From the NCBI GenBank assembly GCA_029953675.1, contig JAMWBK010000006.1:1488001-1552000 (forward strand): a stretch of 64,000 nucleotides of DNA, given 5' to 3'. Position numbers and translations under genes: made by a program. The stretch is from Rhodosorus marinus CCMP1338. Lineage: Eukaryota > Plantae > Rhodophyta. The first letter of the stretch is position 1, and every line of letters starts with the position of its first letter. The notes beneath the pieces are model-generated. The model did no database searches. It was not told the DNA's origin and saw nothing but the letters and a program-made list of their open reading frames with translations. Shown piece by piece: positions 1,973 through 52,670 of the stretch.

Positions 1973-3615
1973 CTTGGCGTTTCCGTTTCCTCCTCGATTT
2001 TCAATAGAGCTTCCAAAGTCTACGCCCTCCACACGCGAAGGATTTCCCCCTCCTACGAGAGCAACACCTCAAAGCGCTGCCCCAGATATAGACAAGAATA
2101 CCACTACTGTCCTCCCGAGGTCGACTCGTTAGATGCGACAACACCCAACCGCTACCTATACACTTTCCGTATTTCTCAGGTAAAAAACCCTCAGAAAATT
2201 CAATAACAGCAAGACTCCAACCTCTCCCACTCATGGCCAGCCTTCTTTCCCAATAAGTAAGTACGTTCGAGGGGTGCTGTCGTTGAGGTGACCAACCACC
2301 CTCAATCAAGATATATTTTTAATGACTGAAGAAGTCACGTTTTTAGAAAACACGCCATCTAAAATATTCAAAATAAGCGAAATACAATGACTGACATTGC
2401 GATTGACTTCCCCGAAGTTAGCCTAATCGCTAAAACCCTTCAAGCTCGGATTGTCGGGGGACATTTCACGTATTCCCTGGGGTGTGGAGAAATCCGTTTC
2501 TGGACAAATATATTGTATTAGGGTAATTTATACGTGCGTATAGAAGTTGAACGGAGTGGCCAATGGGGGGTAGCGGGTGGCTCGGGAGTACCTGCGGAAG
2601 AAGAAAATCTGTGTTTTGAAGTTTTTAAGCGGGGAACCTCAAGAACGCTCTTTTTTCGGACACAGAAGCTGCTGGAAGCGTAAAATATTCATTTTAGATG
2701 TTTTCCGAAATTTTTTTTTTTGGCTTCTTGAGGGGTTCTTGTATCCTGAATTTTCCTCAAAAAAGGGGTCCAACAAAAAAGGAGGAAAGCTAGGAGAAAG
2801 GCTTCCAAATTATTCTGAAAACATGTGATAGGCTGAAGACTATTTTTTTATGTTTCGAGAAGCTTCAGTCGAAAAAGTCTCTAGAATAAAGCAGAACGTG
2901 AATCTTTGTTCGTGAGCCATGCGAAAAATTAAATAAATAAATTGACAGCGCCTTTTTTTGTTGGAAAACCCTGAAGAAAAGAAAGCTATCTTGATCGAAT
3001 AATTAATCAAAAGTTTAGTGCCGGATGTACTGAATTCACAAATTTATGATGCAAAAACAGAATTTCTTCATAAAAGGGACGCATTTTTTAAATTTTTTTG
3101 GACATGGGCTTTAGACATGAAAACTCAGCGATTCCTGCGGAATATCCAGGACAGCACCCTCTCTGTCGGGTCGCATTACCCGCTCCCAAGGATGCATGAG
3201 TTTGCACGGCCATCGGTAGTAGAATTGGACGAAAGATTCCGAAGACAAGCTGTCCCCCACACATTATGTGTTTTGGAACAAATTTTAAGTAGGAGTATTC
3301 ATTTTACGTCTCAAACGGTGGAGACGTCACAATTCACGAGCAGATATGACAACAGCACAAAGTCGTCAAAAGACTCCGGAAAATGACTGACGGCCCTTGC
3401 TGGCATAAAGTAAACTTACATTCGTCAAATATCTTCTCTCAAGGTAAAAGGATAGGAATTCAGAGCCTTAGTATTATGAATGTGAGAAATGTTAGAGGCT
3501 TGATTTGCTTTATCGGGACGTATAACTTCAAATGACCTGCCGGTTGGGTTTGGAATTGAGTGATGCTGGATTCTACTCAAAAAAATCTGGGATGCTGTCC
3601 GCGAGGTTTTTGACT

Positions 3616-15118: not shown

Positions 15119-18100
15119 TTAGATATTCGCTCGTAACTGATCCAAGACCTGGTCTTTCTTGTTTCCGCGTGTTCTGAGCTGAACCCTGATCTCGTGCCGT
15201 GTATCGGCAGGGAGAGGCTCCCGCGGATTTACTCGAATGAGTACGCCAGCAGCTTTCCTGCTTGCTGGTACTCGTCGTATAACCCTGTGGAGCCTCTCGC
15301 CTGTTTCGCGGTCGTGAACTGATGCATAGATGTTTGAGCGTTCGGCTGCTCGGTATTTAACGCGCAGCTCAATCGGTTCTCCCCTTCGCACTGGTGTTAC
15401 AATCGATACAGCCGAGAGCCTATTCCGCGTCACAGATGATACAGATGATGGGACCTCGCTCCTTGGTCGAGCTTGAACGACATGCTTGGCAAACGCCACT
15501 GCTTTGCTTCTGTGTTCACCACGTGGCCTCAGGTCGAGATTGAGTACATGGGGAAGTTCGCGGAGAGCCTCCTTCCCTTTCCTCGGTATAACAACTGAGA
15601 CGCTTCCTTTCCCTTTCCGCACAGGAACGACGAACCCGTCGAGATGATTGTACGGTCCCAGTTGCCTAAAATTCACACGGACATCGGCCGCGAACGGTGC
15701 TGAATATTCCATATCGAACACGAACGTCCCAACAGTTGGAACATGCCTGGGCGCGGAAGCGAACCGCAAGTAGGAATCCAAATTGTTCTCTACATAACGT
15801 GCAACAAATGTCCTCCCATCCCCATCCTCCGATTTGACCGTCTGTACGTGGTCACCACCGTGATCCCATCGATCAAAGTAAAGACCGTTGGCAGTCTCAG
15901 GCGCGAAGACTTGTACTTCAGAGCCAACCACAACCAGCTGTTGATATGGAGCTGGAGCACTATATCCATTGAGTGCCAATTGAATCCCTGGGGGATCAGA
16001 CTCGAATCTGAAAGGTACCTTTCTCGTCCCTATATATCTCTCCGTAGTGCCAATCTGGCCGTCGTAGTCGACTATGAGCCTCAGTTGGTACGCAAAGTTG
16101 TCCAAATGATCCAGCGCATCAACGGAACCGCTCATTTGGCCTCGGAATGAATACTCGATGTGATCATGACATTCGTTATCGTCATTGTAGACGCAGTGAA
16201 GAATCATGTACTCCCACCGAAACGCGGACTCTGGCACGACGTCTCCGTTAGACAGTGTCGCTCGCCCACTGAAATTGATCGTTTCTCCAACCGCCACCAG
16301 CCTTCCTTCTGCTGGCTCGAGGATCTCTGCGTTGATTGTGTAGCCATTCTCCTCAGTGGTGAAGACCACCCTGTAGTTCTCCTCCATCAAGTTTCCAGCG
16401 ATATCTCTAATGCCTCCAGCTCCGCCTTCGATGACAACGGCATACTGAGTTCCATGGTCAAATTCCGCGGTAATCCTCAATCCCAGTCCCGCAGAGTATG
16501 TGTAGTCAAAGGGCAATCTGTCCCCACCAATGGCACGAATATAGACGCCCCCTGCGATCGTGCTAGGATCCAATGGCTCCGAAAGCGTCACAAGGACAGG
16601 CGTGGTGATTGGCACATCCGTGCTCCCAGAGGCAGGAGTGACCGACTCCACCGTCGGTGGCGTCTGGTCTACAGCACCACCAGTTGTTTGAAACTCCCAA
16701 TTGAGATTACCTGGTTGGGTGTTCCCGTCCAAGTCTCTAATTCCATCTGCGCCTCCCTGAACGACCACTCTGAACCGACTGTTGCTAGGCAACGGTGTCG
16801 ATGGTTCTACTCTGAACGTGCGTGAGGCGAACGATAGTGAAACCTCAGCTGGAATCACCCCGCCTCCGCCAACATTAACGAGTTGGATTCTACCGGCGAC
16901 TTCGGCAACAGTCTTTGAGAACCTTCCGGATATGGTCAACCCGTCCTCGGCACTAACCGCTTCTCCCGGCGGAGGGAACTGCTGATCAAGAGTGATGGGG
17001 CTGTCATCCCTTGTATACGTGCACCTCGCCAGATCACCAATTCCACGCACGTTAATCCAGTAGAGGGAGTTATCAGGCCCAACCTTGAATTGAACTGGCG
17101 ATTCAAGGATGTCGATCCTCTCAAGATCCTGCACTCGCTCGTCTTGCTCATTCAGCCGCAAGAATCCGATCCAGCGTCTAGCCTGATCCGCGTAGATCAC
17201 CACGTTCCTATACCTGAAAGGCCAACCTGGGATATCGATCTTGCCACCCACCATCGAGGAACTTGTACCCTCACCATGGTCCCACCAAACGACTGGTCGC
17301 TCATGCTCGCTATCAGGCAGTCTCCTGCACTCTGCATCGTTTTGGTATTCGTGTCTTCTGAGCGTCGATTCCCAGCATGGCCAGCCCATATTCCTACCGC
17401 GCTTGATGACCGACATTTCCTCTTGGGTCAGCCACTGGGTGTCACCGGCGTACACGTGGTCCTCATTGTCCGGGTTAACGTGTAGTTTGAACACATTTCG
17501 TATTCCAAAGGCGTACATCTTGGAGTCCCTTGAGTTAACATCTCCGTTGTACCAAGGATTCGTTGGCAGGCCGCGTCCTTCTTGGTCGATGAGCAAAATC
17601 TTGCCGTTGTACGTCCCAAACTGCTGTGATCGAAGCGCCACTGGGCTGATAATTGCAATCGCTCCATCGCCAACAGCGACGTAGATTGTACCATCCGATC
17701 GAAACGTTAGTGCTCCGCCCACGTGACTCTTCCCTTCCGCGCCAATGCAGTCGGAGTCCGGACCAAAGGCCGCACATCCAGACCCGTTCAGACTCCCAAG
17801 GATCGTCCTGCGAGTTCCGACCTGCTCGTGCAATCCATTCGGGGCTATCCTAACCTTCATGACTCGGGAGGTCTTCTGTCCTTCGTAAGCTGCAGGTCTG
17901 GTGTCGTGTTCGAAAACCAGGAAGAAGTAGACCCAAGGGTTTTCGGCATAGTCAGGTGGAATAGCAATGCTCATTAGGCCACGATCGTGGAACGTATTGA
18001 TCATCAGGGAGACATCAATGAATGGTGTGTCCCGAAGACGACGATTCTCCACAGTATGTACGATACCGTAGTTTTCCGCTACAATCAGGGTTCCGTCCGG

Positions 18101-18724
18101 AAGAAACAAAAAGTCAACAGGTCGATTGATTGGGTCCAAAACCCATCGCTCTGTTCTAAACCCAGTAGGCCATGTGGGTGACAGAACAGGACGTTCTGCG
18201 CGGTTCTCCAGGCTCGGACGGTCGGATTCAGTCATGTCCGTAGTAGTCTCCCAGACCATCTGATCGGTCTCGCTGTGAAAGCAACCCCTTCTCTGGTCCT
18301 TGGCCATTTGATGCATCTTTAGGATATCTTGATCAGTTTCGTCTTCGGTAGGAAAGCATAGTCCCTCTTGAATAAGCCTATGGGCTAGAGGCTCCCCAGT
18401 TCTATCGTATGCCCTCCTAATGCACCCTTTTGGGTGGTGCATAATACGGTCATGCTCCGGTTCATCCAAATATACGCCTGCAGAGTGCACCAGGGAATGA
18501 AGCCGCATCCTTGCAGCGTGTCCACATGGCGAATTTCGGTCGGGAGCAGTCCATCCTAGCAACTGTATGAACTCCCTGTCGGTTTCGTTGTACTGATCAT
18601 TTCTCACCAGAATACTACCTGAGAACGCGTCGAAGTTCCTCGGTGCTGGGTAAAGTGCGAGCGCTGTTGACAGCCAGCAAGCGAGCGCGGCGAATGCGAT
18701 GTACAAATACACTTTTCCACACAT
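15119..18724 (-). CDS. Secreted multidomain GSDH/PQQ-type sugar dehydrogenase-like protein, paralogue 1 (1201 aa, intronless)
   Basis: Signal peptide MCGKVYLYIAFAALACWLSTALA (ATG 18724; upstream track start is TTG). SNase-like segment IQLLGWTAPD...PCGHAARMRL...RRGCF. Propeller motifs DRGLMSIA, SHVGGALTFRSDGTIYVAVGD, YAFGIRNV, GRNMGWPCWE. Two Big_5-like Ig domains (DQTPPTVESVTP...LSEPLD...DIAGN), a PKD-like domain, one SDPPG repeat and two LRPRG-type C-terminal modules. Confidence 0.9.
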   Translation of the reverse strand: MCGKVYLYIAFAALACWLSTALALYPAPRNFDAFSGSILVRNDQYNETDREFIQLLGWTAPDRNSPCGHAARMRLHSLVHSAGVYLDEPEHDRIMHHPKGCIRRAYDRTGEPLAHRLIQEGLCFPTEDETDQDILKMHQMAKDQRRGCFHSETDQMVWETTTDMTESDRPSLENRAERPVLSPTWPTGFRTERWVLDPINRPVDFLFLPDGTLIVAENYGIVHTVENRRLRDTPFIDVSLMINTFHDRGLMSIAIPPDYAENPWVYFFLVFEHDTRPAAYEGQKTSRVMKVRIAPNGLHEQVGTRRTILGSLNGSGCAAFGPDSDCIGAEGKSHVGGALTFRSDGTIYVAVGDGAIAIISPVALRSQQFGTYNGKILLIDQEGRGLPTNPWYNGDVNSRDSKMYAFGIRNVFKLHVNPDNEDHVYAGDTQWLTQEEMSVIKRGRNMGWPCWESTLRRHEYQNDAECRRLPDSEHERPVVWWDHGEGTSSSMVGGKIDIPGWPFRYRNVVIYADQARRWIGFLRLNEQDERVQDLERIDILESPVQFKVGPDNSLYWINVRGIGDLARCTYTRDDSPITLDQQFPPPGEAVSAEDGLTISGRFSKTVAEVAGRIQLVNVGGGGVIPAEVSLSFASRTFRVEPSTPLPSNSRFRVVVQGGADGIRDLDGNTQPGNLNWEFQTTGGAVDQTPPTVESVTPASGSTDVPITTPVLVTLSEPLDPSTIAGGVYIRAIGGDRLPFDYTYSAGLGLRITAEFDHGTQYAVVIEGGAGGIRDIAGNLMEENYRVVFTTEENGYTINAEILEPAEGRLVAVGETINFSGRATLSNGDVVPESAFRWEYMILHCVYNDDNECHDHIEYSFRGQMSGSVDALDHLDNFAYQLRLIVDYDGQIGTTERYIGTRKVPFRFESDPPGIQLALNGYSAPAPYQQLVVVGSEVQVFAPETANGLYFDRWDHGGDHVQTVKSEDGDGRTFVARYVENNLDSYLRFASAPRHVPTVGTFVFDMEYSAPFAADVRVNFRQLGPYNHLDGFVVPVRKGKGSVSVVIPRKGKEALRELPHVLNLDLRPRGEHRSKAVAFAKHVVQARPRSEVPSSVSSVTRNRLSAVSIVTPVRRGEPIELRVKYRAAERSNIYASVHDRETGERLHRVIRRVPASRKAAGVLIRVNPREPLPADTRHEIRVQLRTRGNKKDQVLDQLRANI

Positions 18725-21700
18725 AGTTAGTCCGGTATTCCCTCCTCCGTCCTCGAAAACAGATCCCTCTTCCAACGCTGCACCTTCTACAACAGTTGCT
18801 TTTCGCTTGGCCACCCACAAAAGCCCTCACGACGTTCCGTCAAATACCTCAACAGAGGATGATGTGCTGCGGTAACTACTTGTATTTCTCTTACTGCCCC
18901 AGTCTGACTCGTTCAAAACAAAATCAAACCCTCTTCGCTGACAACGTCCATTGCGAAGATATTCGCTACCCACGGTATAAAGTTGTTGATTCTCTGGATA
19001 GCAATTCGTCACGGTCTGGTGTATGGGAGCTTATGTTAACTGCAACAACGAAATTTCAGAAACGTCTAATTGCAACCCCGCGCCAGAGCTTTCCTCGGCG
19101 TGTATCCCATGTGCAAGCAGAATTCCGCAGACGAGGATGTATCAGTTTGCCTATAGATTTTGTCTCGTGACCCCTATGGAAACGTTCGTGGATGATCACT
19201 GGGGCAATTCGCGACTGATTTCGTTTTGAAACAATTAAGCGCGAGCCGTATCACTGGTCAATCCCCTCCGCTAAATTTGGAAAAGAAAAGCCTCTTCTGT
19301 TCAACACCCCGGAGTAGACGTACAACGATGAAAAAAAGCCAAGGGGTTGATATTTGGTGGAACAAAAACCCCCCAAGAAATCCCTAGGGATTCTGTTTCA
19401 CTCAGTGCCGAGACCAGAGCCACCGTTTGCTCACAAACGCTGAACTCTAGTGGGTAAAAGAATCCGATTTTCCCAGGAGACCCATGGGAAGAGGGGGGGT
19501 AGTAGAGACTTCCCAAGGCAGGGTTTTAGGCTCACAAATCCTTCAAAATTGAGACAATGTAGAAAAGGAACAAAACTCCACCAGCGGAAGAGCATTCAGA
19601 GGGAGGTTCTCTCGCTTGCTCTAAATCTCACACACACACCCCCTAAGTCCGCGAGTCCTGATTTTCATTCAGCATTTTCCGATCTGGCTTTCCGACCGAG
19701 GGAGTCGATACATATCAGGGTCTTCATTTTTCTTAATTGAACGGACGTTACCAGCTCAAGCTCACTCCGACTGCTGCTGAACCCCATACACCCTTCCTAA
19801 CCACGACAATAAACCCAATGTCCGGATGAAAAACCATCCCACAAACAACAAAAAAAATAAATCCCGCAACATCCATCCGCTCTCAAGATATCTAACTTTC
19901 AATATAATTTGACCACTTCCTGACTGTTCCTAATGTATCAGAAACGCAGGAAAGCTCGGAAGGTCAATGGATTCGGCCAGTACCGCATTTTTAATGGGTA
20001 GGGGGTGGGGTTAGGGGGAGCGAAACCGAAAAAATGATCAATATCCTGACCAACAAATGGGACAGAATAAGTGATTGGAAGTTAAGAAATCTTCCATTTG
20101 AGTATACATTATTCGATAATACATGCAGTTTTGATAGGTATTGATTGTACTTAACAATAATAACTCCTTATGATTGGTTATTGTTGATAATGATTGGATT
20201 AGTCTAAATTATTAATTAATACAATTTTGTCCCGTTTACAATAGGAGTTGCTCAATCACCTCACCACCTCCCCTAACACCCACCCCCCAACAACCCCTAC
20301 CATTTTTCGAATAATTATTGTTTCAGCTGCAAAAAAAAGAGGATACGTGCAGCGATTCCTGCCCCCTCCCAGACCCTGAACACCCAACACAAGGAAAACA
20401 GTAAATCTATTTTCATAAGACGTTAAAATATATTTTTTTTGGTCGGAATCTTCGTTTGTATTGTCAGTATTTCGTGTGTATGTTTTTTTTTGTTTTTTTT
20501 TCGTGTTCTGTCTTTGGTCGGGGTTTTATTATTAATATTCTTCTTTTTGGGTGTTTATTAGTTCTTGGAAAATATATGTTAAAAAGGTCTATTTTTGACA
20601 AATGGGGTGTGAATTGAGCGTTTTATCCTCCCAATTCGGATTTGAGGTGTTCGTTGGCGGTTTGTTGTTTTATATGATGGTTTATCGGGTAGAAATTTAA
20701 CTCGTTCTTAGTTTTGGGTTTGTGAAAGTATTCAATATATATGGTATAGAGCATGTTTGGTGATTTATCGATAAATAATTTATAATATACATGGGTGATA
20801 ATTGAGAGGTATGTGTTGTGAATTCTTCCGGTTCGTGAAGGAAGAATGCTGATTTTTCAGCGTGGGCAGCTTGTTTTTCTTTGGTTTGGTGGTGGGTTCC
20901 GGGACGTTTGTGATCATAAAAAACTTCCAAGTGCTGGAATTCGAGAGGGGGCTACTGAGAGTCAGTGACTTGAGTCAAGGGATGAATCTGGCTTGAGCTT
21001 GCAAGGGAGAAATGGAACGGTTTAGGGTGCGGTAAAACCCTCCGCGGTGCTAAGCGGTAAACACTGATTGACCTCTTTGACCTCCGAGCGCTCCAGTCGA
21101 CAGTTGCTCAACGATGAAGCCAATGAAAATGAGGTTTCGGTGAAAAGGAGTGGACGAGGTGAGGACCTTGCGAGAATTTCCCTCTCGAATACATTAAATT
21201 GACCGTCATGAGATGACCTGGGGATTCTCGTTTGGCCAATTGAAGATCCTCTCCTGGATCCGATGAAATTTTATGATTGCTTCTCTAACGAAAATTGGCT
21301 CCGGGGAGATAGGGTCCCCCATTCTATTGGTTTCATCGCTGGGAGCGGCACAAGGTCAATCACTTCTGCACGCTGAATTCCTCTCTCCGACGGGGCTGAC
21401 CTCCTGCTCCATGTGGTCAACAACCACACGAATGCTTCCCCTGGACAATAGGACCAGAGTTCACCTAAGATCAGAGCTCTCCATGGCCCCCCCCGAAAGG
21501 TTACTAACACTGAAAACAAACAAGTTTACGCTGCACGAGGAATAGTCCGTCCCAATCTAAGGTACGCCTGTGAACGTCTTCCTTGGAGATTAGGAAACAA
21601 AACGCCGGTTGACCCTGTAAGTCAAGCAGGCAACCCCGTCATTCTCTCATCTCTCATCCTCTCTCAAAGCTCAATTGAATTATAAATACAATTAGACGAG

Positions 21701-23174: not shown

Positions 23175-26100
23175 TTAAGCGGGTACATATTGAGCTACGA
23201 ACGTTTGCGTCTCTTCAGTTTTCACAACGGTTTTCCTCATCCTACCACCCTCGGCCCATTGATCAAACTTCAGATTATTTAGATGCTGCCATCCGTAAAT
23301 CTTCATCTCTGACCCAATTTCGGCATAGCTTTCGGCTGGAGTCGTCACATTCTCCCAGTTGAACATAATATCCAGGCCACTAGGTATGCTCTGCAAGATG
23401 ACTTTGTTGCTGTAGATCGCTTTAAACGTTTGAGATATTTCGGTCGCCGTGACCTCCCTCTCCCGTGTTGATACGCCATCCTCCCATCGGCTAAATCTTA
23501 ATTCTTCCAGAGACTGTGGGGCAGTTACTGTCGCAATATTGCCAACTGTCATATACGTGACGAAAGGCGTCGCTTTCTTCACCTGACTATTATTCCCTTT
23601 CGTGAAAGTCAACACCAGCCCTTCAGGTTGGCTCGTAACTGTTATTGGAACCCCGCTAGCGACAGCCTTGTAAACCGCGGTGTACGTAAGCTGGCTCCGA
23701 CGAACCAGAATGGTGGTAATCCTTTCTTTGTTTGGGTATTCCTTCCAGTGGGAAAACTCGAGGATATCACTATTTTCCATGGGCTTAGGCTCCAATCTCA
23801 AATATTGCCCAACAGGGTGATACATAGTGACAGGCGTCGTATACGTATCCGCATTAATCCGCACCACTAGGCCAGGTGGATCACTTGTAATAGTTCTCTT
23901 CGCACCGTAAACTGCTGTAACTTTCTGTGGACCGTTCATCTCAACGAGCTTCACGCGATTGAGGTCTCCATCACTCCATTTCAAAAACTTCAATTCGCCT
24001 GAAAACTCTGGAGCTGTCAACTCCACAGTTTCCGCCTCTTCAAAAGCCCATGTGTAGGGGGTTTCACCGCCTTTGCCCTTCGCTTGTATCTTCACGTACC
24101 AAGGGGAGCTGTTTACCTCCAGTTCGTATCCATATACACATGTGAACGTTCTCGTTTGAGTAGCAACAATCTGCCTCTCTCGATCCCCTCCGTCCTCCAT
24201 CCATTTCACCCAAACCATACCATTTGATTTGCGAGCGCAAGAGATGGCCGTGACGCTCCCAGTCTGTTGTTCGACAGTGAACGGCGCGGCTTGTGTTTCG
24301 TCGTTCACTGTCACAGGAGCGCCGTTGGGTTGGCTCTCTATCACGAGTGTAACTATTTGGCTAGCCTCCGCAAACAATGCGCGGAAGGAGAGTGGCGTGT
24401 GCCCAACGGTGATCCATCTAATTCGGGTAGTTACACCATCCAGCCAGCCCTGGAAAACTAGACCTTTCGATGTCGCGGGTGCTGCAATCTGAATGCGAGC
24501 TCCGACCTCTACAACTTTTCCGAACGGGGCAATCGCACCTTTTCTGTCTAATGTTGCCCTTATTCCAGTTGGACTTGTTTCCATGGAATAGAGAACTCCA
24601 TAAACTGCTTTGAAGGTCGTCGCCCGTTCGGCTGTAACCTGTTTTTCCCGTTGCCCTCCTTCTGCCCACTTCATGAAGGTCATAGGCCCCGCTCCGTCAG
24701 GAGCGTATAGCAGTACAGGAGAAAATCGTACAACTTTCTCGGTAAATGGTGTCGTCCTCAAGACTCCATTCAAAGCTAGCGGTAGTCCGGGGGGTTGACT
24801 TTCAAGGGTAAATAACGCACGCCAAGTTTTGACGGTTGCAAAGGCTTGTCCAATTTGATTGTTGTACACCGCGAACAAGCCCACCTCGTAGAAAAAGTTG
24901 TCGAAGTGGAAAGGCGCTACGATGCTGCCCTCTGATACCCCTTCCTTGTAATACTCCACGTGATCATGGCAGGTAGGATCCTCAGTAAAAGGGCAATGCT
25001 TGATTAGAATCTGCCATCGCAGATATGAGCTCGAAATCTCGTATCCCTCTGCGTCAAACGCTCTTCCTTTGAAGTTGATCGTGTCTCCGACGGTAATTGT
25101 TTCTCCATGTGTTGGGGAGAGAATCTCCGCTACAACTGTAGCTCCTCGCTCTTCAGTGGTGAATGACCAAGAATACTCGCTTGCAAGGCGGTTTCCAGCT
25201 AGATCACTGATGCCAGCAGCCCCCCCAAGCACCGTCACCGTGAAGCGTGTGCCGTAGAATAGGTCATCTTGTAATTTGAGTTGCCGAGAACTATCAACCC
25301 ATCTGAAATTCTGCATCGGAAAAACAAAGCCACTTTCCGTGACTACGGTGATCTTGTCAAGGATGTCAGTTACGTCAATCTCTTCGCTGAACTCGATTGT
25401 GATGGACTTCGACTGACTAGCGCCGGTCTCATCCGAAGCTGGAAGCGTCCGCACAATAGTAGGCGGGGTAGTATCCGAGCTCGAGGTTAGTCGGAACAGG
25501 GTAACGATGTCGTTCTCCAGCACGTTGTTGTCAAGATCAAGCACCCCTGAGGGCCCACCCTTGATGACAAGCCAGAAGTCTCGGTCTTCAATCAGGGTTA
25601 CAGTTGGCTTAACTATAAACGTCCTCCTCTCATAGTCAAACTCCAAATTGGTGGCAACGACACCGCCGGTGTCGTTTCTTATAAATACAGTTTCGCTGGT
25701 GACTGTGTCAGGCTCCACTGACTTGCTAAAGATGCCGGATATCTCATCGAAGTTTGAAGATGAGACTTGTTCGCCATCGTTTGGATTCACAGCCTCCAAT
25801 ACGAGAGGAGTGATATCGGCCTCGTAGGTGACTCTCAGAATAGTCCCCGCGTTATACACGCTGACAACATAAAGTGCATTGTCTAATCCAGCCTTTACTT
25901 GAACCGGATTAACGTCCGTGAGCTGCCAGCGCTCGACATCTTTGACAAACACATCATTTTCATCAAGTTCAGCGAAGCCGATCCATCCGGCGGCGTGGTC
26001 TGCGTAAATCAATCGATCATAGTATCGCCTCGGGAAGTTTCCGATTCGAATTCGCTCACCGGCCATTGACGAGTGAGTTGAACTCTCGTGTGGCCAGGCA

Positions 26101-27674
26101 ATTATAGGCTTAGCATGTGAGGCTACATCAAAGCTCTCACACTCCGGATTATTGTACCATTGCGTGTTTTTCACATCCGACTCGAAACAAGGCCATCCGT
26201 GGTTGTTCCCTTTCCTCAGAACGCTGATTTCCTCCTTTTTATTCCACTGCGTATCTCCAAAGTAGAACGTAAAGCCGTCCAATGGGCTGCGGTGCAGATG
26301 TAGTACGTTCCGTATGCCGTAGGCGTATATTTTTGATAATTTATGGATAGGGTTTCCGGTATACCACGGATTGTCTTCTACGCCAAGACCGAGAGATCCT
26401 TCTGCTGTAGAGACGCGGATAACTTTCCCGCTGTAGGTGTTTGATCGCTGGGCCTTTAGGGCGTCTTCCTTTATCCATGAAAACCCACCATCACCAACTG
26501 CGACCAAAAGATTTTTCAACTCGTCGAAGTTGATTCCCCCACCCACATGACTCCTGCCCGCTGCACCCAGGCAATCTGCGTGCGGGTCATTGCCATCAAT
26601 AGTATCGCACCCATAACCAGACCGCGTGCCCACAACTACCTCGCGCGTTTCAGGGAGTTCTTCCTTACCGTCCGCGCTAAGCTTCACGCGCATCACGCGA
26701 GCTGTGCGGGCCGACTTGTAAGTCGCAGGGTCACTGCTGTGCTCATATACTAGGTAGACGTAGACCAGAGAGTCTTCGTCAAAGCTTGGCGAGAGTTTCA
26801 TAGACATTACACCTCGGTCGTTGTAGTTGTTCACAAAAGTCCGCCAGTCCAATACAGAACCTCCTACTACCTTTCCGTCAGACGCAAGTCGAAACAATCG
26901 CCCTTCGTTGAGTGCTACGTAGATAACGCCTGGTGACGCAAACTCGATATCAACCGGCCTAAAAAGGAAGCCAGACGTCCACTCTTCAACCTTAAAACCA
27001 GTTGGGAATTCCTCGAGAAGATCAGTAGCACGACCAGCAGCGTTGACTTTCACGTGACTTGTTTCTCCACTGCTTCCTTCCGATGCCGCCCTAGTCTTGT
27101 CTCCATTAAACCTATATCGCAATTCGTCATTTTTATCGCTTATTGTCGTGAATTCCTCTCGGTCAACTGCCTTGTTTGTCCTCCAATAGCAGCCTCTTCC
27201 CTCAGCGCGCATTTTCTCGTTGAGAGCCGCCAGTATTGCGTCGTTCTTACAGCTTTCCCCAAGCCCGGCGAGCCCGGACTTAATCATACTCCTTACAATT
27301 CCACGCACTTGCTGAGACAAAAGCACCTCTCGTTCGGTGCCTGGGCCACTGCATACCTTCAACCTCACCCTTTCTCCCGTGAGAAGCTGATGTAGTTTCA
27401 ACCTCGCTGCCAGACCACATGGATGGTTCCTGTAAATCGTTTCAATACAGGGAATACGCAGCAGCTCATTGTTCAGATTATTTACTGTGACGTTAGCCCC
27501 TATGGCTCTTCCCACCAGCATGCCATCGTAGGCAAACCAATCCCTGTACACATGCACATCACGAGTACAATCTTTCCTCTCTTTTCCATGAACTCCATCT
27601 ATCCCAAATAATACACAGAATGCGAGAAGAACCAAAAGACTCTGCGCCAGGGGCCCTCTTATTCTAACCTCCAT
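23175..27674 (-). CDS. Secreted multidomain GSDH/PQQ-type sugar dehydrogenase-like protein, paralogue 2 (1499 aa, intronless, seven C-terminal repeats)
   Basis: Signal peptide MEVRIRGPLAQSLLVLLAFCVLFGIDGVHG. SNase-like RNHPCGLAARLKLHQLL...GRGCYW. SHVGGGINFD...VAVGD, YAYGIRNV, NNHGWPCFE. Two Big_5-like domains, a PKD-like HCPFTEDPTCHDH, and seven ~75-aa S[QD]P[PN]G...W.[DE]G..R repeats. Confidence 0.9.
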   Translation of the reverse strand: MEVRIRGPLAQSLLVLLAFCVLFGIDGVHGKERKDCTRDVHVYRDWFAYDGMLVGRAIGANVTVNNLNNELLRIPCIETIYRNHPCGLAARLKLHQLLTGERVRLKVCSGPGTEREVLLSQQVRGIVRSMIKSGLAGLGESCKNDAILAALNEKMRAEGRGCYWRTNKAVDREEFTTISDKNDELRYRFNGDKTRAASEGSSGETSHVKVNAAGRATDLLEEFPTGFKVEEWTSGFLFRPVDIEFASPGVIYVALNEGRLFRLASDGKVVGGSVLDWRTFVNNYNDRGVMSMKLSPSFDEDSLVYVYLVYEHSSDPATYKSARTARVMRVKLSADGKEELPETREVVVGTRSGYGCDTIDGNDPHADCLGAAGRSHVGGGINFDELKNLLVAVGDGGFSWIKEDALKAQRSNTYSGKVIRVSTAEGSLGLGVEDNPWYTGNPIHKLSKIYAYGIRNVLHLHRSPLDGFTFYFGDTQWNKKEEISVLRKGNNHGWPCFESDVKNTQWYNNPECESFDVASHAKPIIAWPHESSTHSSMAGERIRIGNFPRRYYDRLIYADHAAGWIGFAELDENDVFVKDVERWQLTDVNPVQVKAGLDNALYVVSVYNAGTILRVTYEADITPLVLEAVNPNDGEQVSSSNFDEISGIFSKSVEPDTVTSETVFIRNDTGGVVATNLEFDYERRTFIVKPTVTLIEDRDFWLVIKGGPSGVLDLDNNVLENDIVTLFRLTSSSDTTPPTIVRTLPASDETGASQSKSITIEFSEEIDVTDILDKITVVTESGFVFPMQNFRWVDSSRQLKLQDDLFYGTRFTVTVLGGAAGISDLAGNRLASEYSWSFTTEERGATVVAEILSPTHGETITVGDTINFKGRAFDAEGYEISSSYLRWQILIKHCPFTEDPTCHDHVEYYKEGVSEGSIVAPFHFDNFFYEVGLFAVYNNQIGQAFATVKTWRALFTLESQPPGLPLALNGVLRTTPFTEKVVRFSPVLLYAPDGAGPMTFMKWAEGGQREKQVTAERATTFKAVYGVLYSMETSPTGIRATLDRKGAIAPFGKVVEVGARIQIAAPATSKGLVFQGWLDGVTTRIRWITVGHTPLSFRALFAEASQIVTLVIESQPNGAPVTVNDETQAAPFTVEQQTGSVTAISCARKSNGMVWVKWMEDGGDRERQIVATQTRTFTCVYGYELEVNSSPWYVKIQAKGKGGETPYTWAFEEAETVELTAPEFSGELKFLKWSDGDLNRVKLVEMNGPQKVTAVYGAKRTITSDPPGLVVRINADTYTTPVTMYHPVGQYLRLEPKPMENSDILEFSHWKEYPNKERITTILVRRSQLTYTAVYKAVASGVPITVTSQPEGLVLTFTKGNNSQVKKATPFVTYMTVGNIATVTAPQSLEELRFSRWEDGVSTREREVTATEISQTFKAIYSNKVILQSIPSGLDIMFNWENVTTPAESYAEIGSEMKIYGWQHLNNLKFDQWAEGGRMRKTVVKTEETQTFVAQYVPA

Positions 27675-32676: not shown

Positions 32677-35600
32677 CTATTGCTCAACAATCATTAGGCG
32701 CAGGTCACGATCTTCAAAGAGACCAGTCTTAGTCTTTAAGACAGCCCTCAGCTCGTACACAAGGCTCGGGTCAAGATTGTTGTAGTTAAGGTTAATCGTC
32801 GCTTGGCCAGGGCCAGGTTTCACAGATATCTTCTTCCTGATGACGGAGTTCTTCCCGAGAGTATGAAGCTCCACAAACAAATCCCGTCCCTGAGCAGCAA
32901 CGACCAGTGCAACCCAGGCGACTTCAACCTTCAGTGGCCCCTGCTTGGGAATAATCGTGCTGCTTCCAAGAATAGTCACGTGATCGTGTTGCTGCACATT
33001 GACTTTGTTGATGACTGTAGCCTTGTTCTGGCTTGCCATAGTGCCACGCGGCCGGATGGCCAGTTGCACATTGTACGGTCCACGTTGCGGGGTCAATCCC
33101 GAGAAATCCAGCGGGCCAATGTCTTCAACACCATAACCCCTGCCTACTTCCTTCTTGGCAACTGCAATTCTGTTCTTCTCCTTGGTCGATTGGATCGTCA
33201 AGAAAATGTCGCTAGGTTCCGAAGCAGCCCAGCTAGTCTTCACGTAGTACGGCCCATCTGCGGAGATCCTGTCTGAATGCGCCTTCCTCACAAATCTCAC
33301 TGAAGACCTTGACGGAATTCCCGGACGGCTAGAAGCGAGCGCAATATAGATAGTACCAGCATACCTGTCAGAAAACTCAGCACCCCTGGGCCTCAAGTCA
33401 ACTCTGACCCTATACGTTTCACCCTCTTTGAGCTGCCCGTAGCCCCTTAGAGTAAGGTCTCGCTTGCCAGAACCTTGAGGAACATTAAAACGTTGATTGA
33501 CGATGGCCCCGCTCTCGGTTGCGACTTGTATGCTCAGAGAAATCTCAGCCGGTGCTGGTGCAGTAAAGGTCACGCTTACTGGAATTCCACCGCTCAACCT
33601 CAAAAACTTTCTCGGATTAGTCACCACAATGTTCCCGCCGGTGGGATTGGGGGTTGGTGGGGCCGGACCGATAGTTGGAGTACCACCACTTGTCTCCTTT
33701 GCGTAGATTGCTCGGTAGGTGGTTGCCTTCAAAATTTTTATATTCTGGATGCGAGGGCCTCCGCCAGCCCACCTGACAAATTTCCACTGATTATTGGGTC
33801 CGTACGTCTCAGGCGCGAATACTTGAGCGTCGGATCCAAGCACAACGAGCTCCGAGAAAGGTGCATTCACTGTGTATCCGGTAAGCGATAAAGGTACACC
33901 GGCTGGCTGACTCTCGAAGTTAAATCTGACCTTCTTTGTTTCCACAAACTGGGATACTTGAACGGTTTCGCCTCTCCAGGTCACGACCATCAAAACCTCG
34001 TAGAAGAAGTTGTCCTCATGTGTCGCAGCCTTAAAGGTTCCGGACCTAGTCCCCTCGGCCTGGCCAGCTGAATGAGTATGGCACGATGGCGGCGTGGTGT
34101 ACGAGCAATGATGGATGAGCAGCTGCCAGCCGAAAGCCTCGCGTGGGATGTTGTTCCCGTTGCGTGTGTCAATAGCTACACCAGCAAAGGGAATGCTGTC
34201 CCCGACTTCAACCTTCAGGGTCTTACTAGGTTTCGTGATGCTGGCATCAATTGAGCTCGGGTTCTTGCCGGTTCTGAACGAGAACTGGAAGTTTTCGGAT
34301 AGCGAATTGCCAGCTAAATCTTTCACACCATTTTTCGCTTTGAAGGCTACGATATACGTAGTCCTGAAGTCGAGATTTGCACCCTTGATCGTGATGGCTC
34401 TCGCACTCGCGTCATACTCCGCTTCCCCTCCATTTACCTCCCCAGCGCCTTTCTTCGATATAGTGTAGCTGCCGCTGACCGTGCTCGCATCAAGTGCCTC
34501 GCTAAAGCGCACTCTAATGTCATCGCTTGGGTCTACATCCTCTTCTTTGTGCTTCGGTCTCGTACTGACAACGGTGGGATCCTTCTTATCGACGGTCGCG
34601 CTGACCGTATAGGTGTAAATCAGATCCTTGTTCAGCACTCCACCGTCCAAGTCTACAACACCTGCTCTGCCACTCTTCACAACGAGGGATACTTTCTCCC
34701 CTGCGGTAAGAGCCTTCGTTACCGTGAGCTCGAAAGATCGCCTCCCGTAGTCAAACTTGTAGTCCGCAGCAATTCTGACGCCCTTCGCGTTCCTAAGGAA
34801 CACGTTCTGTCTAGTTGCGCTGTCGGGCTCAACTGACTTCGTGAACTTTCCATTGAAAACGCTGTTTCTTGTCTTGATCTGAGTCCCTGGGTCGGGTGTG
34901 AGATTGACTTTGACAGGAGTCTTGTCTCTCGTGTAGGTAACCTTTGTCAACTCTCCAATGCCGTATACACTGATAAAGTACAACGAATTATCAGGTCCAG
35001 CACGAACTTGCACAGGCGCAGCACTCACATATACTCGGTCCAGGTCCTCCACCAGTACGTCCTGGTTATTCAACTTCGCAAAACCGATAAACCTGTGCGC
35101 GTTGTCGGCGTAAGTAAGCACATCGTAGTATCGATTCGGCCAGCCTTTGATCGAGATTCTCTCTCCAATCATCACAGCGTATGACTTTCCTTCGAAGTGA
35201 GGGTATTCGATCAGGGGCTCCTTGTGCTTCTTATTGGCTATCAACTTTTTGCATTCATCAGTCTTAGCCCAGAATTTGAGGGGTAAGGTCCCCTCAAAGC
35301 AGGGCCATCCGAAATTCGCTCCAGCAGTGACGACATCAATCTCCTCCATTGAGCTCCATTGCACATCACCGATGTAGAACCGGTTCTTGTTCGTGGTACT
35401 CGGATGGATGTGCAACGGGTTCCGGACTCCAGTTGCATAAATCTTGGACCGGATGTGCTTTCCATTCCCGTCGAAGTAGGGGTTATTCTTGAGACCCTCT
35501 CCCAGAGTGGCCCTCTTCGTTGATATTCTTAGGATCTTTCCACTCAGAGATGTAAGTCGCTGGGCATTGATCGCCGATGGGACAACTGAAGCGAATTCAC

Positions 35601-36711
35601 CATCTCCAACAGTCACGACCAGGTTGTTATCCTCGTCAAAGGCGAGCCCACCGCCGACGTGGCTCTTGTCATTCACTGAAAGGCAGTCCGCATTTTTATT
35701 TGCTTTGAGTGCTTGTTTGCATCCAAACCCTTCCTCCTTTCCGATGACAATCTCCCGAGATTTCTTGTCTTCGCGCTTCCCATTAATAATCATTGTACGA
35801 ACAACTCGTCCAGTTCTCGCCTTCTGGTAGTCGGCAGCTCGCTTCGTATGGTCATATACATGGAAGAAGTACAGATAAGGCTTCTGTTTGTAGTCATTGG
35901 CGATGGCTATCGACATGATTCCACGGTCGTGATAGTCGTTGGTCTCATCCCTCACATCCACTACGTCTTTCTGAATGATCCGCCCCTGCTTACTGAGCCG
36001 GAGGATACGTCCCTCGTTCAGTCCGACAAGGACATTGTCATTAGGCTCGAAAAGGAAATCCACGGGTCTGAACATGACGTCCTTAGAAAACCTCTCCTCT
36101 TCAAATCCAGTTGGCCAGTTGCCCTCGCTAAGGAAGTTCACGCGGGAGGAGACATCAAGTCTCGGTCCCGTGCTAAGCCTAGAGAAGCTACGAATGTGCT
36201 TCACCTCATCGCCACCTCCTCCATAGTATTCCAACTTCACCAGATTCTTGAAGTAACAGTTTTCCATCCCGGCTTCAAACTCCCGTCTCTTGTTAAAGTG
36301 CATATCCACGAGCTCCGAATCCGCAGTCTCATCAGCGCCGGCGAGGTTCCGCCCAATCATTATCTTCGCAATTGCCTTGAGGGAGTCGGAGCTCTTCGCG
36401 ACGAACATGTTCTCCTCCGTATCCCACTCGATTTCCAGATCTCCAATCGCGGGAAGGAGCTGCTCCAACTTCAGTCTCGCGGCTAAGCCGCAAGGTGAGT
36501 TCCGATGAATGACATCCCAGTTCACGAGCTTGATTGTCAGCGTATCCGTGCAGTTCGAGCAGTCCTGCAGAATAGTGTTTCCATTGTACGTCTGAAATGA
36601 GCTATCGATAGTCTGCACTATTGGCTTACCCTCTGCCAATCCCACAAGCAGGCAGCCGACCAAAAAAACCAAAGCTGCGCTCCGTCCGACACGCATCATC
36701 TTTCTTGCCAT
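32677..36711 (-). CDS. Secreted multidomain GSDH/PQQ-type sugar dehydrogenase-like protein, paralogue 3 (1344 aa, intronless, Lys-rich)
   Basis: Signal peptide MARKMMRVGRSAALVFLVGCLLVGLAEG. SNase-like RNSPCGLAARLKLEQLL...MENCYF. SHVGGGLAFDEDNNLVVTVGD, YATGVRNP, GANFGWPCFE. Two Big_5-like domains, a PKD-like HHCSYTTPPSCHTH, one SQPAG repeat, a P/T linker GGTPTIGPAPPTPNPTGG and three [LI]RPRG-type modules. Confidence 0.9.
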   Translation of the reverse strand: MARKMMRVGRSAALVFLVGCLLVGLAEGKPIVQTIDSSFQTYNGNTILQDCSNCTDTLTIKLVNWDVIHRNSPCGLAARLKLEQLLPAIGDLEIEWDTEENMFVAKSSDSLKAIAKIMIGRNLAGADETADSELVDMHFNKRREFEAGMENCYFKNLVKLEYYGGGGDEVKHIRSFSRLSTGPRLDVSSRVNFLSEGNWPTGFEEERFSKDVMFRPVDFLFEPNDNVLVGLNEGRILRLSKQGRIIQKDVVDVRDETNDYHDRGIMSIAIANDYKQKPYLYFFHVYDHTKRAADYQKARTGRVVRTMIINGKREDKKSREIVIGKEEGFGCKQALKANKNADCLSVNDKSHVGGGLAFDEDNNLVVTVGDGEFASVVPSAINAQRLTSLSGKILRISTKRATLGEGLKNNPYFDGNGKHIRSKIYATGVRNPLHIHPSTTNKNRFYIGDVQWSSMEEIDVVTAGANFGWPCFEGTLPLKFWAKTDECKKLIANKKHKEPLIEYPHFEGKSYAVMIGERISIKGWPNRYYDVLTYADNAHRFIGFAKLNNQDVLVEDLDRVYVSAAPVQVRAGPDNSLYFISVYGIGELTKVTYTRDKTPVKVNLTPDPGTQIKTRNSVFNGKFTKSVEPDSATRQNVFLRNAKGVRIAADYKFDYGRRSFELTVTKALTAGEKVSLVVKSGRAGVVDLDGGVLNKDLIYTYTVSATVDKKDPTVVSTRPKHKEEDVDPSDDIRVRFSEALDASTVSGSYTISKKGAGEVNGGEAEYDASARAITIKGANLDFRTTYIVAFKAKNGVKDLAGNSLSENFQFSFRTGKNPSSIDASITKPSKTLKVEVGDSIPFAGVAIDTRNGNNIPREAFGWQLLIHHCSYTTPPSCHTHSAGQAEGTRSGTFKAATHEDNFFYEVLMVVTWRGETVQVSQFVETKKVRFNFESQPAGVPLSLTGYTVNAPFSELVVLGSDAQVFAPETYGPNNQWKFVRWAGGGPRIQNIKILKATTYRAIYAKETSGGTPTIGPAPPTPNPTGGNIVVTNPRKFLRLSGGIPVSVTFTAPAPAEISLSIQVATESGAIVNQRFNVPQGSGKRDLTLRGYGQLKEGETYRVRVDLRPRGAEFSDRYAGTIYIALASSRPGIPSRSSVRFVRKAHSDRISADGPYYVKTSWAASEPSDIFLTIQSTKEKNRIAVAKKEVGRGYGVEDIGPLDFSGLTPQRGPYNVQLAIRPRGTMASQNKATVINKVNVQQHDHVTILGSSTIIPKQGPLKVEVAWVALVVAAQGRDLFVELHTLGKNSVIRKKISVKPGPGQATINLNYNNLDPSLVYELRAVLKTKTGLFEDRDLRLMIVEQ

Positions 36712-51695: not shown

Positions 51696-52670
51696 TCAGA
51701 GAAGATAATCGGAAATCTGTGCCTCCCTTCCAACGTCTGCGAAATCCCCTTGGAATCGTTTTCGTCTGAATTCTCCAAAGCTTAGTGCTTTGTATTTGCT
51801 GGCTGAGCAGCTTACCGGATCCGTCACGCTTTGAACAACGATGTCCGGTGACGGGTTCCAGAAAAATGCAATCGAAAGCCGGGGATCTGATGTTTCAGTT
51901 TTAACTCTGTGAAGAATTGAGCGGAATCGATCGTCGGAGAGAACCTGCAGCATGTCCGCAACGTTGAAACATAAAGCGTCCTCGACTGGTTTCACGGTCC
52001 GCCAGGCTTTGTCCTCGCGGTCCGAACCATCTCCGTCTCCCGTGTACACCTGAAGACCAGGAACGCCATTTGTAGCAAGCAGAGTGAAGAATCCAGCATC
52101 CGTATGTCTCTGGATCCCCAACGATGTCTCATGTTGTGAAAACTCTTCGACGTAGTAGTTCACTCTACAGAACGATGAGTGCCCTTCGAACAAACTCCGT
52201 ACGCTGTCCCACGGAAGGCCCAAACCGCGAGTGGTCAAGATTTTCGTCAGCTTCCAGCAAAGCTCTTCCACACGAGAAAAATACTCCTCCAAAGATCTCC
52301 TGAACTCCGGCAGCTCCTCAGGCCATCGATTTACGCCATCGACATCAACACCGCAATCCTTCCCGAAATCAAAGGCCTCCTTCGCGTCTCGTTCGTTCTT
52401 CGTCAGCTCGTCATTCATAAATCCCCGTGCATTGTCCTCGGATCTCTTCACCCGCATCTTCACGCCGCTATCAGACTTGAAGAAGCGCTCAGACTCTTCC
52501 CTCCCCTTCGCCAGCAGCTCAACCGGGATCCCATGTCCAACCAACTGCCCACATCCAAACCCTTCACAGGCTTTCACCAGCGCATCGAGCGTTTCAGAGG
52601 CTTCCTCGCCACTTTCATCCACCAGGAGGCATTCAATATTGATCAATGGTAACTCTACGAGCTCGTCCAT
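51696..52670 (-). CDS. 2-oxoglutarate/Fe(II)-dependent oxygenase (DIOX_N + 2OG-FeII_Oxy, IPNS-like), 324 aa, intronless
   Basis: N-terminal ACEGFGCGQLVGHGIP; iron ligands RHTD and HRV; 2OG-binding RLSIAFF; RVNYY. Confidence 0.92.
   Translation of the reverse strand: MDELVELPLINIECLLVDESGEEASETLDALVKACEGFGCGQLVGHGIPVELLAKGREESERFFKSDSGVKMRVKRSEDNARGFMNDELTKNERDAKEAFDFGKDCGVDVDGVNRWPEELPEFRRSLEEYFSRVEELCWKLTKILTTRGLGLPWDSVRSLFEGHSSFCRVNYYVEEFSQHETSLGIQRHTDAGFFTLLATNGVPGLQVYTGDGDGSDREDKAWRTVKPVEDALCFNVADMLQVLSDDRFRSILHRVKTETSDPRLSIAFFWNPSPDIVVQSVTDPVSCSASKYKALSFGEFRRKRFQGDFADVGREAQISDYLL

Follow-up and report, generated by a model that had tools for sequence, protein, structure and literature searches.

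The window examined here, a 64-kb stretch (64,000 nucleotides) of contig JAMWBK010000006.1 analysed over its whole length, carries three large open reading frames (ORFs) in tandem on its minus strand: W1 (15119-18820), W2 (23175-27674) and W3 (32677-36711). Each encodes a six-bladed beta-propeller of the GSDH superfamily, which also contains the soluble glucose dehydrogenase sGDH, a proven enzyme of pyrroloquinoline quinone (PQQ). By residue alignment, the algal propellers keep one half of the sGDH cofactor site and have rebuilt the other, and the rebuilt pocket recurs, nearly invariant, in a large branch of bacterial and archaeal proteins. The best reading is that of a horizontally acquired, secreted module whose pocket is conserved but non-canonical; as to what this module does, we lean, with modest conviction, toward a catalytic, glycan-directed role in which PQQ would not be held in the canonical way. 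The genes and the W1 propeller are placed as follows.

15119..18724, minus strand: W1, intronless coding sequence of 1201 amino acids (aa) from the ATG at 18724; the mechanical ORF (1233 codons) runs to 18820
23175..27674, minus strand: W2, 1499 aa; propeller at aa 223-618 (25821-27008), with at least six B-repeat-like units C-terminal to it
32677..36711, minus strand: W3, 1344 aa; propeller at aa 199-594 (34930-36117)
17012..18172, minus strand: W1 six-bladed GSDH-like beta-propeller, aa 217-603; Pfam PF07995, E=5.5e-28

The propeller fold

The ATG at 18724 is the annotated start of W1, and a database protein identical to it (P0001; 100%, 1201 aa) lies on a 2.47-Mb contig. W1, W2 and W3 are 32-37% identical to one another over ~960-1230 aligned residues. 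The Pfam GSDH family, PF07995, matches W1 at aa 232-590 (E=5.5e-28), W2 at aa 239-614 (E=1.5e-21) and W3 at aa 216-473 (E=9.9e-24); given E-values of this order in all three ORFs, chance similarity is therefore excluded. The interval singled out in a first-pass annotation of this DNA, 16990-18140 (W1 aa ~227-611), lies within the propeller. The structural model that had been suggested there as a check is a confident one: AlphaFold2 predicts six blades, with a predicted local distance difference test (pLDDT) score of 90.5 and a predicted template-modelling (pTM) score of 0.91. The best Foldseek matches of this model in the Protein Data Bank (PDB) are Asd-type proteins and sGDH (E ~1e-21 to 1e-20; TMt 0.82-0.85 for the Asd-type structures 7cdy, 3a9g, 2g8s and 2ism), followed by HHIP (template-modelling score, TM, ~0.6), including HHIP-C bound to heparin (7pgm), and then by the fungal AA12 enzymes (TM 0.57-0.60, E 1e-9 to 1e-11).

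A profile built from 17 propellers (alignment A1) finds E. coli Asd (2g8s) at 4e-42 and sGDH (1c9u) at 4e-35. The homology to sGDH that the first-pass annotation had recognised thus holds by Pfam, by profile and by Foldseek, as does fold homology to Asd, and its claim of a propeller with a common set of motifs in all three paralogues is borne out by Pfam, motif coordinates, AlphaFold2 and Foldseek alike. The NCBIfam sGDH model TIGR03606, however, scores the propellers at 41-45 bits, far below its cut-off of 434.55. By sequence, the propeller is a member of the PF07995 superfamily that falls outside the sGDH/Asd branch of proven PQQ enzymes.

A pocket shared with a bacterial and archaeal branch

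All three paralogues present, in the same order, SHVGG...F...GDG, G[IV]RN, EE-x6-G-x-N-x-GWPC-x-E and then SPVQ (W1), NPVQ (W2) or APVQ (W3). The W2 motifs read SHVGG, GIRN, EEISVLRKGNNHGWPCFE and NPVQ, and those of W3 read SHVGG, GVRN, EEIDVVTAGANFGWPCFE and APVQ. (The first motif had been written H-V-G-G..F; HVGG and the F are both present, but the true spacing is HVGG, three residues and then F, a trivial correction.) Residue equivalences were taken from high-posterior hmmsearch alignments of the A1 profile to 2g8s and 1c9u, and the W1 residues concerned are these, all on the minus strand.

17714..17728, minus strand: S365-H366-V-G-G; Ser-His opposite sGDH D143-H144, with His366 the equivalent of the catalytic base His144
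17495..17506, minus strand: G-I-R441-N442, equivalent to sGDH Arg228/Asn229; the next-but-one residue, Phe444, is opposite Gln231
17417..17446, minus strand: G-D460-T-Q-W463...E467-E468, the blade-4 B-C loop, equivalent to sGDH E245-Q246-G247-P248 (Ca2+ site region), and an acidic pair (EE at 17417-17422)
17369..17386, minus strand: G-W-P-C482-W-E484; Glu484 is branch-specific
17276..17278, minus strand: His515, branch-specific, aligned to the sGDH pocket residue Thr348
17180..17194, minus strand: Y-A-D545-Q-A547; Asp545 opposite sGDH Ser375, Ala547 opposite Lys377
17090..17101, minus strand: S574-P575-V576-Q577, start of blade-6 strand A, opposite sGDH Arg406-Tyr407-Arg408-Asp409 (R-I-R in Asd)

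In this alignment the propellers keep sGDH His144, Arg228 and Asn229 (as H366 and R441-N442), and the Arg406/Arg408 pair is lost, S/N/A-P-V standing opposite R406-Y-R408; on both points the first-pass annotation was right. Its caveat of an altered pocket also proves apt, since Lys377, Gln231 and Gln246 are replaced as well. Across the algal propellers, Gln231 becomes Phe or Leu, Glu245-Gln246-Gly247-Pro248 becomes Asp-Thr/Val-Gln-Trp, Thr348 becomes His, Ser375-Leu376-Lys377 becomes Asp-x-Ala, and Arg406-Tyr-Arg408 becomes S/N/A-P/A-V. Consequently, none of the three cationic residues that clamp the PQQ carboxylates remains (Lys377 is replaced by Ala547, Arg406 by Ser, Asn or Ala574, and Arg408 by Val576), and an invariant Asp545 lies two residues away from the former Lys377 position. 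In the Ca2+ site region, Asp460 (opposite Glu245) and Glu467/468 are kept; the sGDH ligands there are the backbone carbonyls of 247/248.

In sGDH, Oubrie et al. 1999 reportedly found Arg406 paired with a PQQ carboxylate, and Gln231 and the Gln246-Gly-Pro loop are said to serve as a stacking and hydrogen-bonding floor. Lys377 clamps the C-7 carboxylate of PQQ, and its role and that of Arg408 are described in PMC6881789. The strand pattern assigned by DSSP to the AlphaFold2 model puts the altered residues at the same topological places as the sGDH contacts, that is, at A-strand starts and B-strand ends on the top face. What the algal propeller has in common with sGDH of Acinetobacter calcoaceticus (1c9u/1cq1) and E. 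coli Asd/YliI (2g8s) is the six-bladed fold, the base His, the Arg-Asn pair, DNPF, GKILR, [DE]-E and GWP. It is, however, only 17-21% identical to them, has Asp545, His515, Glu484 and two disulfide-type Cys pairs in addition, has the Lys377, Arg406, Arg408, Gln231 and Gln/His246-Gly-Pro positions replaced, and sits in a secreted multi-domain protein of 1200-1500 aa.

The A1 profile retrieves 53,835 superfamily members from 1.84 billion representatives; each of the 150 top-ranked members exceeds 397 bits. The branch signature was derived here from 157 non-algal representatives, one per 50%-identity cluster, and reads [ST]-H ... R-N-P-[FY] ... G-D-V-G-W ... E-E ... G-W-P-C-x-E-G ... H ... D-[YF] ... 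G-P-V. A wider form that includes the alga, [ST]H...RNP[FY]...GD[VT][GQ]W...EE...GWPCxE...H...D...[PA]V, is found in the three paralogues and in ten algal homologues. Among the 157, the retained half of the site is nearly fixed: His at position 366 (sGDH His144) in 155, Arg at 441 (Arg228) in 156 and Asn at 442 (Asn229) in 155. The rebuilt positions are conserved as well. Phe or Tyr occupies position 444 (Gln231) in 147, and positions 460-463 (Glu245-Pro248) are Asp in 141, Val in 147, Gly in 151 and Trp in 132; the acidic pair at 467 and 468 is Glu in 155 and 148, respectively. Cys is found at 482 in 140, and Glu at 484, which has no sGDH equivalent, in every one of the 157. At 515 (Thr348) there is His in 133 and Arg in 13, at 545 (Ser375) Asp in 155, and at 546 (Leu376) Tyr or Phe in 134. 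Position 547 (Lys377) holds Ala, Val, Ser, Gly or Thr, 574 (Arg406) is Gly in 97, and 576 (Arg408) is Val in 134; neither Lys nor Arg is among the residues tabulated for the 157 representatives at 547, 574 or 576.

In the 13 algal sequences, S365, H366, R441, N442, D460, W463, E467, E468, C482, E484, H515, D545, A547, V576 and Q577 are invariant. Since the 157 representatives, drawn from diverse bacteria and archaea, show this constellation with hardly any variation, the algal pocket is, as judged from these alignments, the signature of a large uncharacterised branch rather than the outcome of decay in the alga. That a polar constellation is conserved between proteins sharing 25-45% identity elsewhere further indicates a working site, one that is not the PQQ site of sGDH and Asd. 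At least 594 loci belong to the branch, in Acidobacteriota, Chloroflexota, Planctomycetota, Verrucomicrobiota, Bacteroidota, Actinomycetota and Thaumarchaeota; Myxococcota are represented too.

The bacterial DVGW/GWPCxEG proteins (for example, those of Corallococcus, Pyxidicoccus, Longispora, and Anaerolineales and Thermomicrobiales metagenome-assembled genomes, MAGs) resemble the algal ones in the pocket signature, at every position tabulated, and in an architecture of SNase-like domain, propeller, Ig(HH..H.H) module and Big_5, with 26-36% propeller identity. The algal copies differ at the pocket rim, where V-G becomes T-Q, Y/F546 becomes Q/H/N/M/I and G574 becomes S/N/A; they have also lost the second Arg of RNPFRF, and they are without NPCBM, PKD and PA14 domains.

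Candidate functions of the pocket

The half of the sGDH site that is kept consists of the base His, the acidic residue of the metal loop and the Arg-Asn pair that holds the quinone oxygens. In the rebuilt half, Lys and two Arg have given way to small or hydrophobic residues and the two Gln of the stacking floor to an aromatic residue and Val/Thr, with an Asp and a His gained. We favour the view that this near-invariant polar pocket is a catalytic or ligand site whose target is a glycan outside the cell; for the alga, this would probably be a polysaccharide of its own matrix, sulfated or acidic. His366 could serve as acid/base, and Arg441/Asn442 together with a divalent metal bound by Asp/Glu could hold the substrate; Asp545, His515 and the aromatics at 444, 463 and 546 would join the retained half, an arrangement that fits acid/base chemistry on a metal-held sugar. 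A hydrolase, a lyase, a lactonase and a non-canonical oxidoreductase are all possible.

An extracellular, glycan-directed function is suggested because the relatives are secreted, carry glycan-binding or adhesion modules, and include no electron-acceptor domain among their listed families. The bacterial relatives are secreted multi-domain proteins with PKD (25 of 44), NPCBM (11) and PA14 (11) domains, along with fn3, ConA-like lectin, F5/8 type C and malectin modules, and in one case with a fused GT2 glycosyltransferase. Neither a cytochrome nor a cupredoxin nor any other electron-acceptor domain appears among the families listed for them. The genomic surroundings are uninformative on function: P0012 lies in a Prim-Pol mobile-element neighbourhood and P0013 lies with exopolysaccharide (EPS) genes and a GH140-like gene, and there are neither pqq genes nor redox partners around either.

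Several points weigh against this preference. The residues that are kept, Arg-Asn and the base His, are exactly those expected of a quinone enzyme; the six-bladed propeller of the fungal AA12 enzyme CcPDH lacks several canonical ligands and yet binds PQQ tightly (PMC4133262, PMC6881789); and public annotation, by homology transfer, reads 'PQQ-dependent sugar dehydrogenase'. In addition, we infer that D460, H515 and D545 line the pocket from their alignment beside sGDH contacts and from strand topology, the place of E484 in the pocket is uncertain, and the function of the branch as a whole is likewise one that we infer.

That the propeller is a genuine quinoprotein, binding PQQ (or an o-quinone akin to it) by other than canonical contacts, with His515 and a metal bridged by Asp460, Asp545 and Glu467-468 in place of the Lys/Arg clamps, seems unlikely. 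Were it so, these would be secreted algal enzymes that oxidise matrix sugars with PQQ scavenged from associated bacteria. In its favour, the His and the Arg-Asn pair, through which O5/O4 of PQQ is held, are near-invariant (at least 155 of 157), and the acidic metal-loop residue is retained. Further support comes from known proteins: CcPDH is PQQ-dependent and takes His539/His560 and backbone amides, not Lys377, for the carboxylates (PMC6881789, PMC4133262), six-bladed PQQ proteins of the proposed lanthanide type have metal sites rich in acids (bioRxiv 10.64898/2026.07.10.737718), and in fungal AA12 a eukaryote uses PQQ that it cannot make (PMC6881810). However, every proven six-bladed PQQ enzyme has an Arg in its last blade (sGDH Arg408, CcPDH Arg621; PMC6881789), where the branch has Val in 134 of 157 and Arg in none tabulated. 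Around what would be a trianionic cofactor, three positive charges have disappeared and one or two acids have come in. The low TIGR03606 score and the want of an electron-acceptor domain, both in W1-W3 (Pfam) and among the families listed for relatives, argue in the same direction, and the catalytic His is not diagnostic, being present in the non-enzymatic HHIP (PMC4133262).

A caution about annotation comes from Teredinibacter turnerae, whose secreted multi-domain protein TERTU_3803 has a domain (pf08450-X173) annotated likewise as a PQQ glucose/sorbosone dehydrogenase that showed neither PQQ binding nor glucose dehydrogenase activity (PMC10916295); this domain is SGL (PF08450) rather than GSDH, and it serves as a warning, not as a homologue. 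With three clamps gone throughout the branch, a His that is not diagnostic and this precedent, the proposal of the first-pass annotation that the alga needs bacterial PQQ is left unsupported. Its parallel with B12 would in any case not be new in principle, as fungal AA12 enzymes already use PQQ that fungi cannot make. More doubtful still is the wider proposal that the DVGW/GWPCxEG branch constitutes a new class of extracellular quinoproteins, with PQQ or another bacterial quinone in a His- and metal-bridged pocket; an ancient red-algal lineage that took it over from bacteria would then depend on bacterial PQQ for remodelling its sulfated matrix.

The fungal AA12 enzymes (CcPDH, 6jt5/6jwf; T. 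reesei, 6h7t) are nonetheless an instructive comparison. Like the algal proteins they are eukaryotic, secreted and six-bladed, are of bacterial ancestry, keep the base His and Arg-Asn, and lack several sGDH ligands. Their nine PQQ ligands are R273, H363, R430, N431, H539, H560, W563, N564 and R621 (PMC6881789); through the sGDH equivalences H363, R430 and N431 are matched in the alga, but R621 is not. AA12 has the last-blade Arg621 plus Arg273, His539 and His560 (PMC6881789), whereas the only algal candidate for such a role is His515. The algal proteins are also without an AA8 cytochrome or CBM1, and a PDB sequence and profile search gives no sequence-level match of the propeller to the AA12 structures 6jt5 and 6h7t. 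The lanthanide-type PQQ-6beta proteins were considered as a home for the branch and rejected; membership of that group requires the full set of nine AA12 PQQ ligands, and the branch does not have it (bioRxiv 10.64898/2026.07.10.737718).

About as improbable as a PQQ enzyme is a non-catalytic propeller of the HHIP or lectin type, binding a glycan (for example, a sulfated matrix polysaccharide) or another ligand as a structural or adhesive matrix component. HHIP is the next-best structural match after the dehydrogenases (TM ~0.6, including the heparin-bound 7pgm), and it is no enzyme although its 'catalytic' His is retained (PMC4133262). It is likewise a secreted eukaryotic protein with a GSDH-superfamily propeller from which the PQQ clamps are absent (PMC4133262), and it binds sulfated glycans (7pgm). 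The algal proteins, moreover, are long Ig-like/repeat chains with signal peptides, and adhesion or lectin modules decorate the bacterial relatives. However, some ten polar pocket residues are near-invariant across many bacterial phyla and some archaea, and across differing partner modules, a pattern to be expected of catalytic or cofactor sites more than of lectins; HHIP has no reported invariant pocket of the catalytic type, and separate modules of the carbohydrate-binding (CBM) type already provide glycan binding. The profile match to HHIP (E ~5e-24) covers only the first 243 profile positions, and Pfam finds in W1-W3 neither the Frizzled-like nor the EGF modules typical of HHIP.

A GSDH protein of another architecture, the ThuA-GSDH-PKD-CBM6 protein of Cellulosimicrobium cellulans, copurifies as a beta-xylosidase/glucosidase (PMC4562250). 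ThuA fusions were found neither in the seven relatives scanned for them nor among the families listed for relatives.

Origin and accessory modules

Full-length homologues (35-46% identity) are solely red-algal, and come from Bangiopsis sp. CCMP1999, Rhodosorus marinus transcriptomes (MMETSP) and the R. marinus genome (KAJ8902619.1). In a related organism the orthologues are 87% (W1), 86% (W2; P0043) and 88% (W3; P0041) identical, and the W1 orthologue (87%) is on a 4,074-nt transcript-sized contig. Comparison of W1 with the orthologous transcript gives a ratio of nonsynonymous to synonymous substitution (dN/dS) of 0.22 overall and 0.20 in the propeller; the algal genes are kept under purifying selection. 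In a neighbour-joining distance tree without support values, the 13 algal propellers form one clade on a long stem among the bacterial representatives, and the split between W1-type and W2/W3-type sequences precedes that between Bangiopsis and Rhodosorus.

The similarity to bacterial proteins extends beyond the propeller. Between W1 and bacterial P0012, the propeller is 36% identical (E=6e-68), the module of Ig-like HHC..CH.H and B-repeat aligns at E=2e-18, and Big_5 is aligned as well. W1 is arranged in the order signal peptide, SNase-like domain, propeller, two Big_5 domains, Ig-like HC..CH.H module, B-repeat-like unit and C-terminal units found only in algae. Read directly from the translations, the N-termini of W1, W2 and W3 are each hydrophobic and signal-peptide-like. 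The modules of W1 outside the propeller are these.

18191..18655, minus strand: SNase-like (thermonuclease-fold) N-terminal domain, aa ~56-210; Pfam SNase match weak, E=0.17
16355..16987, minus strand: two Big_5 bacterial Ig-like domains, aa ~612-822; Pfam PF13205, E=1.6e-26, in two stretches
15791..16342, minus strand: Ig-like module and one B-repeat/PEGA-like unit, aa 827-1010; motif W....LHC(x9)CHDH at 16160-16201
15122..15790, minus strand: alga-only C-terminal units, aa 1011-1233, each closing in L-R-[PT]-R-G

An iterated search among the proteins collected here links the N-terminal SNase-like domain to 31 non-algal relatives, Big_5 to 26 non-algal proteins and the Ig/B-repeat module to the propeller in 121 of ~160 bacterial relatives; the same search gives no non-algal match for the C-terminal units. 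SNase+GSDH fusions are common in bacteria. The annotation of many relatives, from MAGs of Anaerolineales and Actinomycetota and from metagenome contigs, includes PF00565 (SNase), and several of them carry the name 'glucose/arabinose dehydrogenase/endonuclease YncB'. Read directly, the bacterial SNase copies keep the DGDT and GIDAP(E) motifs, as well as the Cys pair of GNTxCG...RGCLW, whereas the algal copies have lost both motifs. The Ca2+-ligand and catalytic positions of SNase are gone from the algal copies, W2 and W3 having equivalent N-termini, and the algal domains are probably pseudo-nucleases.

Pfam finds two Big_5 Ig-like domains in each of W1, W2 and W3. The Ig-like module that follows in W1 (aa 827-1010) is 30% identical to P0012 aa 587-755 (E=2e-18). 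The motif of this Big_7-like module, W....[HK]HC-x(5-9)-CH.H, occurs at 16160-16201 in W1, 24960-25004 in W2 and 34072-34116 in W3, and some bacterial modules are without the Cys pair yet have histidines (P0013: LLHHNSHVH). This His/Cys motif could be a His-cluster metal site, or the module a partner domain of the propeller. B-repeat/PEGA-like units number one each in W1 and W3, and at least six in tandem at W2 aa ~955-1499 (23175-24800), with F..W..GG at aa 1000, 1074, 1155, 1230, 1394 and 1470. The L-R-P/T-R-G ends of the C-terminal units fall at aa 1097 and 1215 of W1 and at aa 1106, 1219 and 1325 of W3 (W3 units aa ~1030-1344); these units look like an alga-specific repeat that was added after transfer.

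The simplest history that these comparisons suggest is a single ancient transfer followed by later duplication. A cassette of SNase-like domain, propeller and Ig-like modules, of bacterial origin, would have entered a red-algal ancestor once; duplication would have preceded the parting of Bangiopsis, Rhodosorus and the organism of the window, with tandem retention and the addition of the alga-specific C-terminal units. The shared architecture suggests a Chloroflexota- or Actinomycetota-like donor. Of the bacterial relatives that share the cassette, the closest is P0012; on its contig (L002, 2977-8457) it adjoins a Prim-Pol/DUF3987 gene and a helix-turn-helix (HTH) regulator, and this mobile-element-like neighbourhood might bear on the spread of such cassettes.

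Just eight ORFs of at least 200 aa lie within the 64-kb window. Features outside the W1-W3 genes include the following.

1049-2032, minus strand: ORF with a weak match to the basic leucine zipper (bZIP) family bZIP_1, E=1.3e-3, under the Pfam cut-off
51696-52670, minus strand: intronless 2-oxoglutarate (2OG)-Fe(II) oxygenase with a plant-type DIOX_N domain (E=5.7e-22 and 4.4e-19)
55611-57458, plus strand: Ty3/gypsy-type retrotransposon pol fragment (RT_RNaseH, Integrase_H2C2, rve, SH3_Tf2-1)

The window is eukaryotic: its long ORFs are few, and it contains the bZIP-like ORF, the plant-type 2OG oxygenase and the Ty3/gypsy pol fragment. These features, and full-length homologues confined to red algae, fit the algal host named in the first-pass annotation, and the best reading places the genes in a red-algal nuclear genome. 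Bacterial contamination or decaying pseudogenes, to which the bacterial-type architecture, the nearest non-algal relatives and the absence of introns might point, are highly improbable, as the genes are flanked by eukaryotic features on a 2.47-Mb contig, all three ORFs are intact over 1200-1500 codons, orthologues occur in MMETSP red-algal transcriptomes and, at 87%, on a 4-kb transcript-sized contig, dN/dS is ~0.2, and the C-terminal units are found only in algae.

GSDH-domain genes have already been counted in red-algal genomes (PMC12115072), a brown-algal 'PQQ-dependent sugar dehydrogenase' has been noted, with its metabolic versus signalling role in doubt (bioRxiv 10.1101/2024.02.19.579948), and the use by fungal AA12 of PQQ made by bacteria is established (PMC4133262, PMC6881810). 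Algal genes of this sort are therefore not new in kind, and nor is cofactor scavenging. What appears to be undescribed in the literature searched is the membership of these algal genes in a very large bacterial branch whose invariant pocket is distinct and clamp-less, and the apparent transfer of a whole SNase-like/propeller/Ig cassette. The genes offer a clean case of an ancient bacterial cassette that became fixed in early-branching red algae, which produce sulfated mucilage copiously, and that was tandem-duplicated there and gained alga-specific modules. If PQQ is bound after all, eukaryotic PQQ use would be extended from fungi to algae, with a testable cofactor dependency on the microbiome; and a new quinoprotein class, if true, would give a second vitamin-like dependency between algae and bacteria besides B12. 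Tens of thousands of bacterial proteins and a red-algal family are at present labelled 'PQQ-dependent sugar dehydrogenase' by homology, despite a tightly conserved pocket that differs and is without the residues known to hold PQQ. Identifying the ligand of this pocket would put right an annotation in very wide use, and might uncover a new carbohydrate-active function outside the cell.

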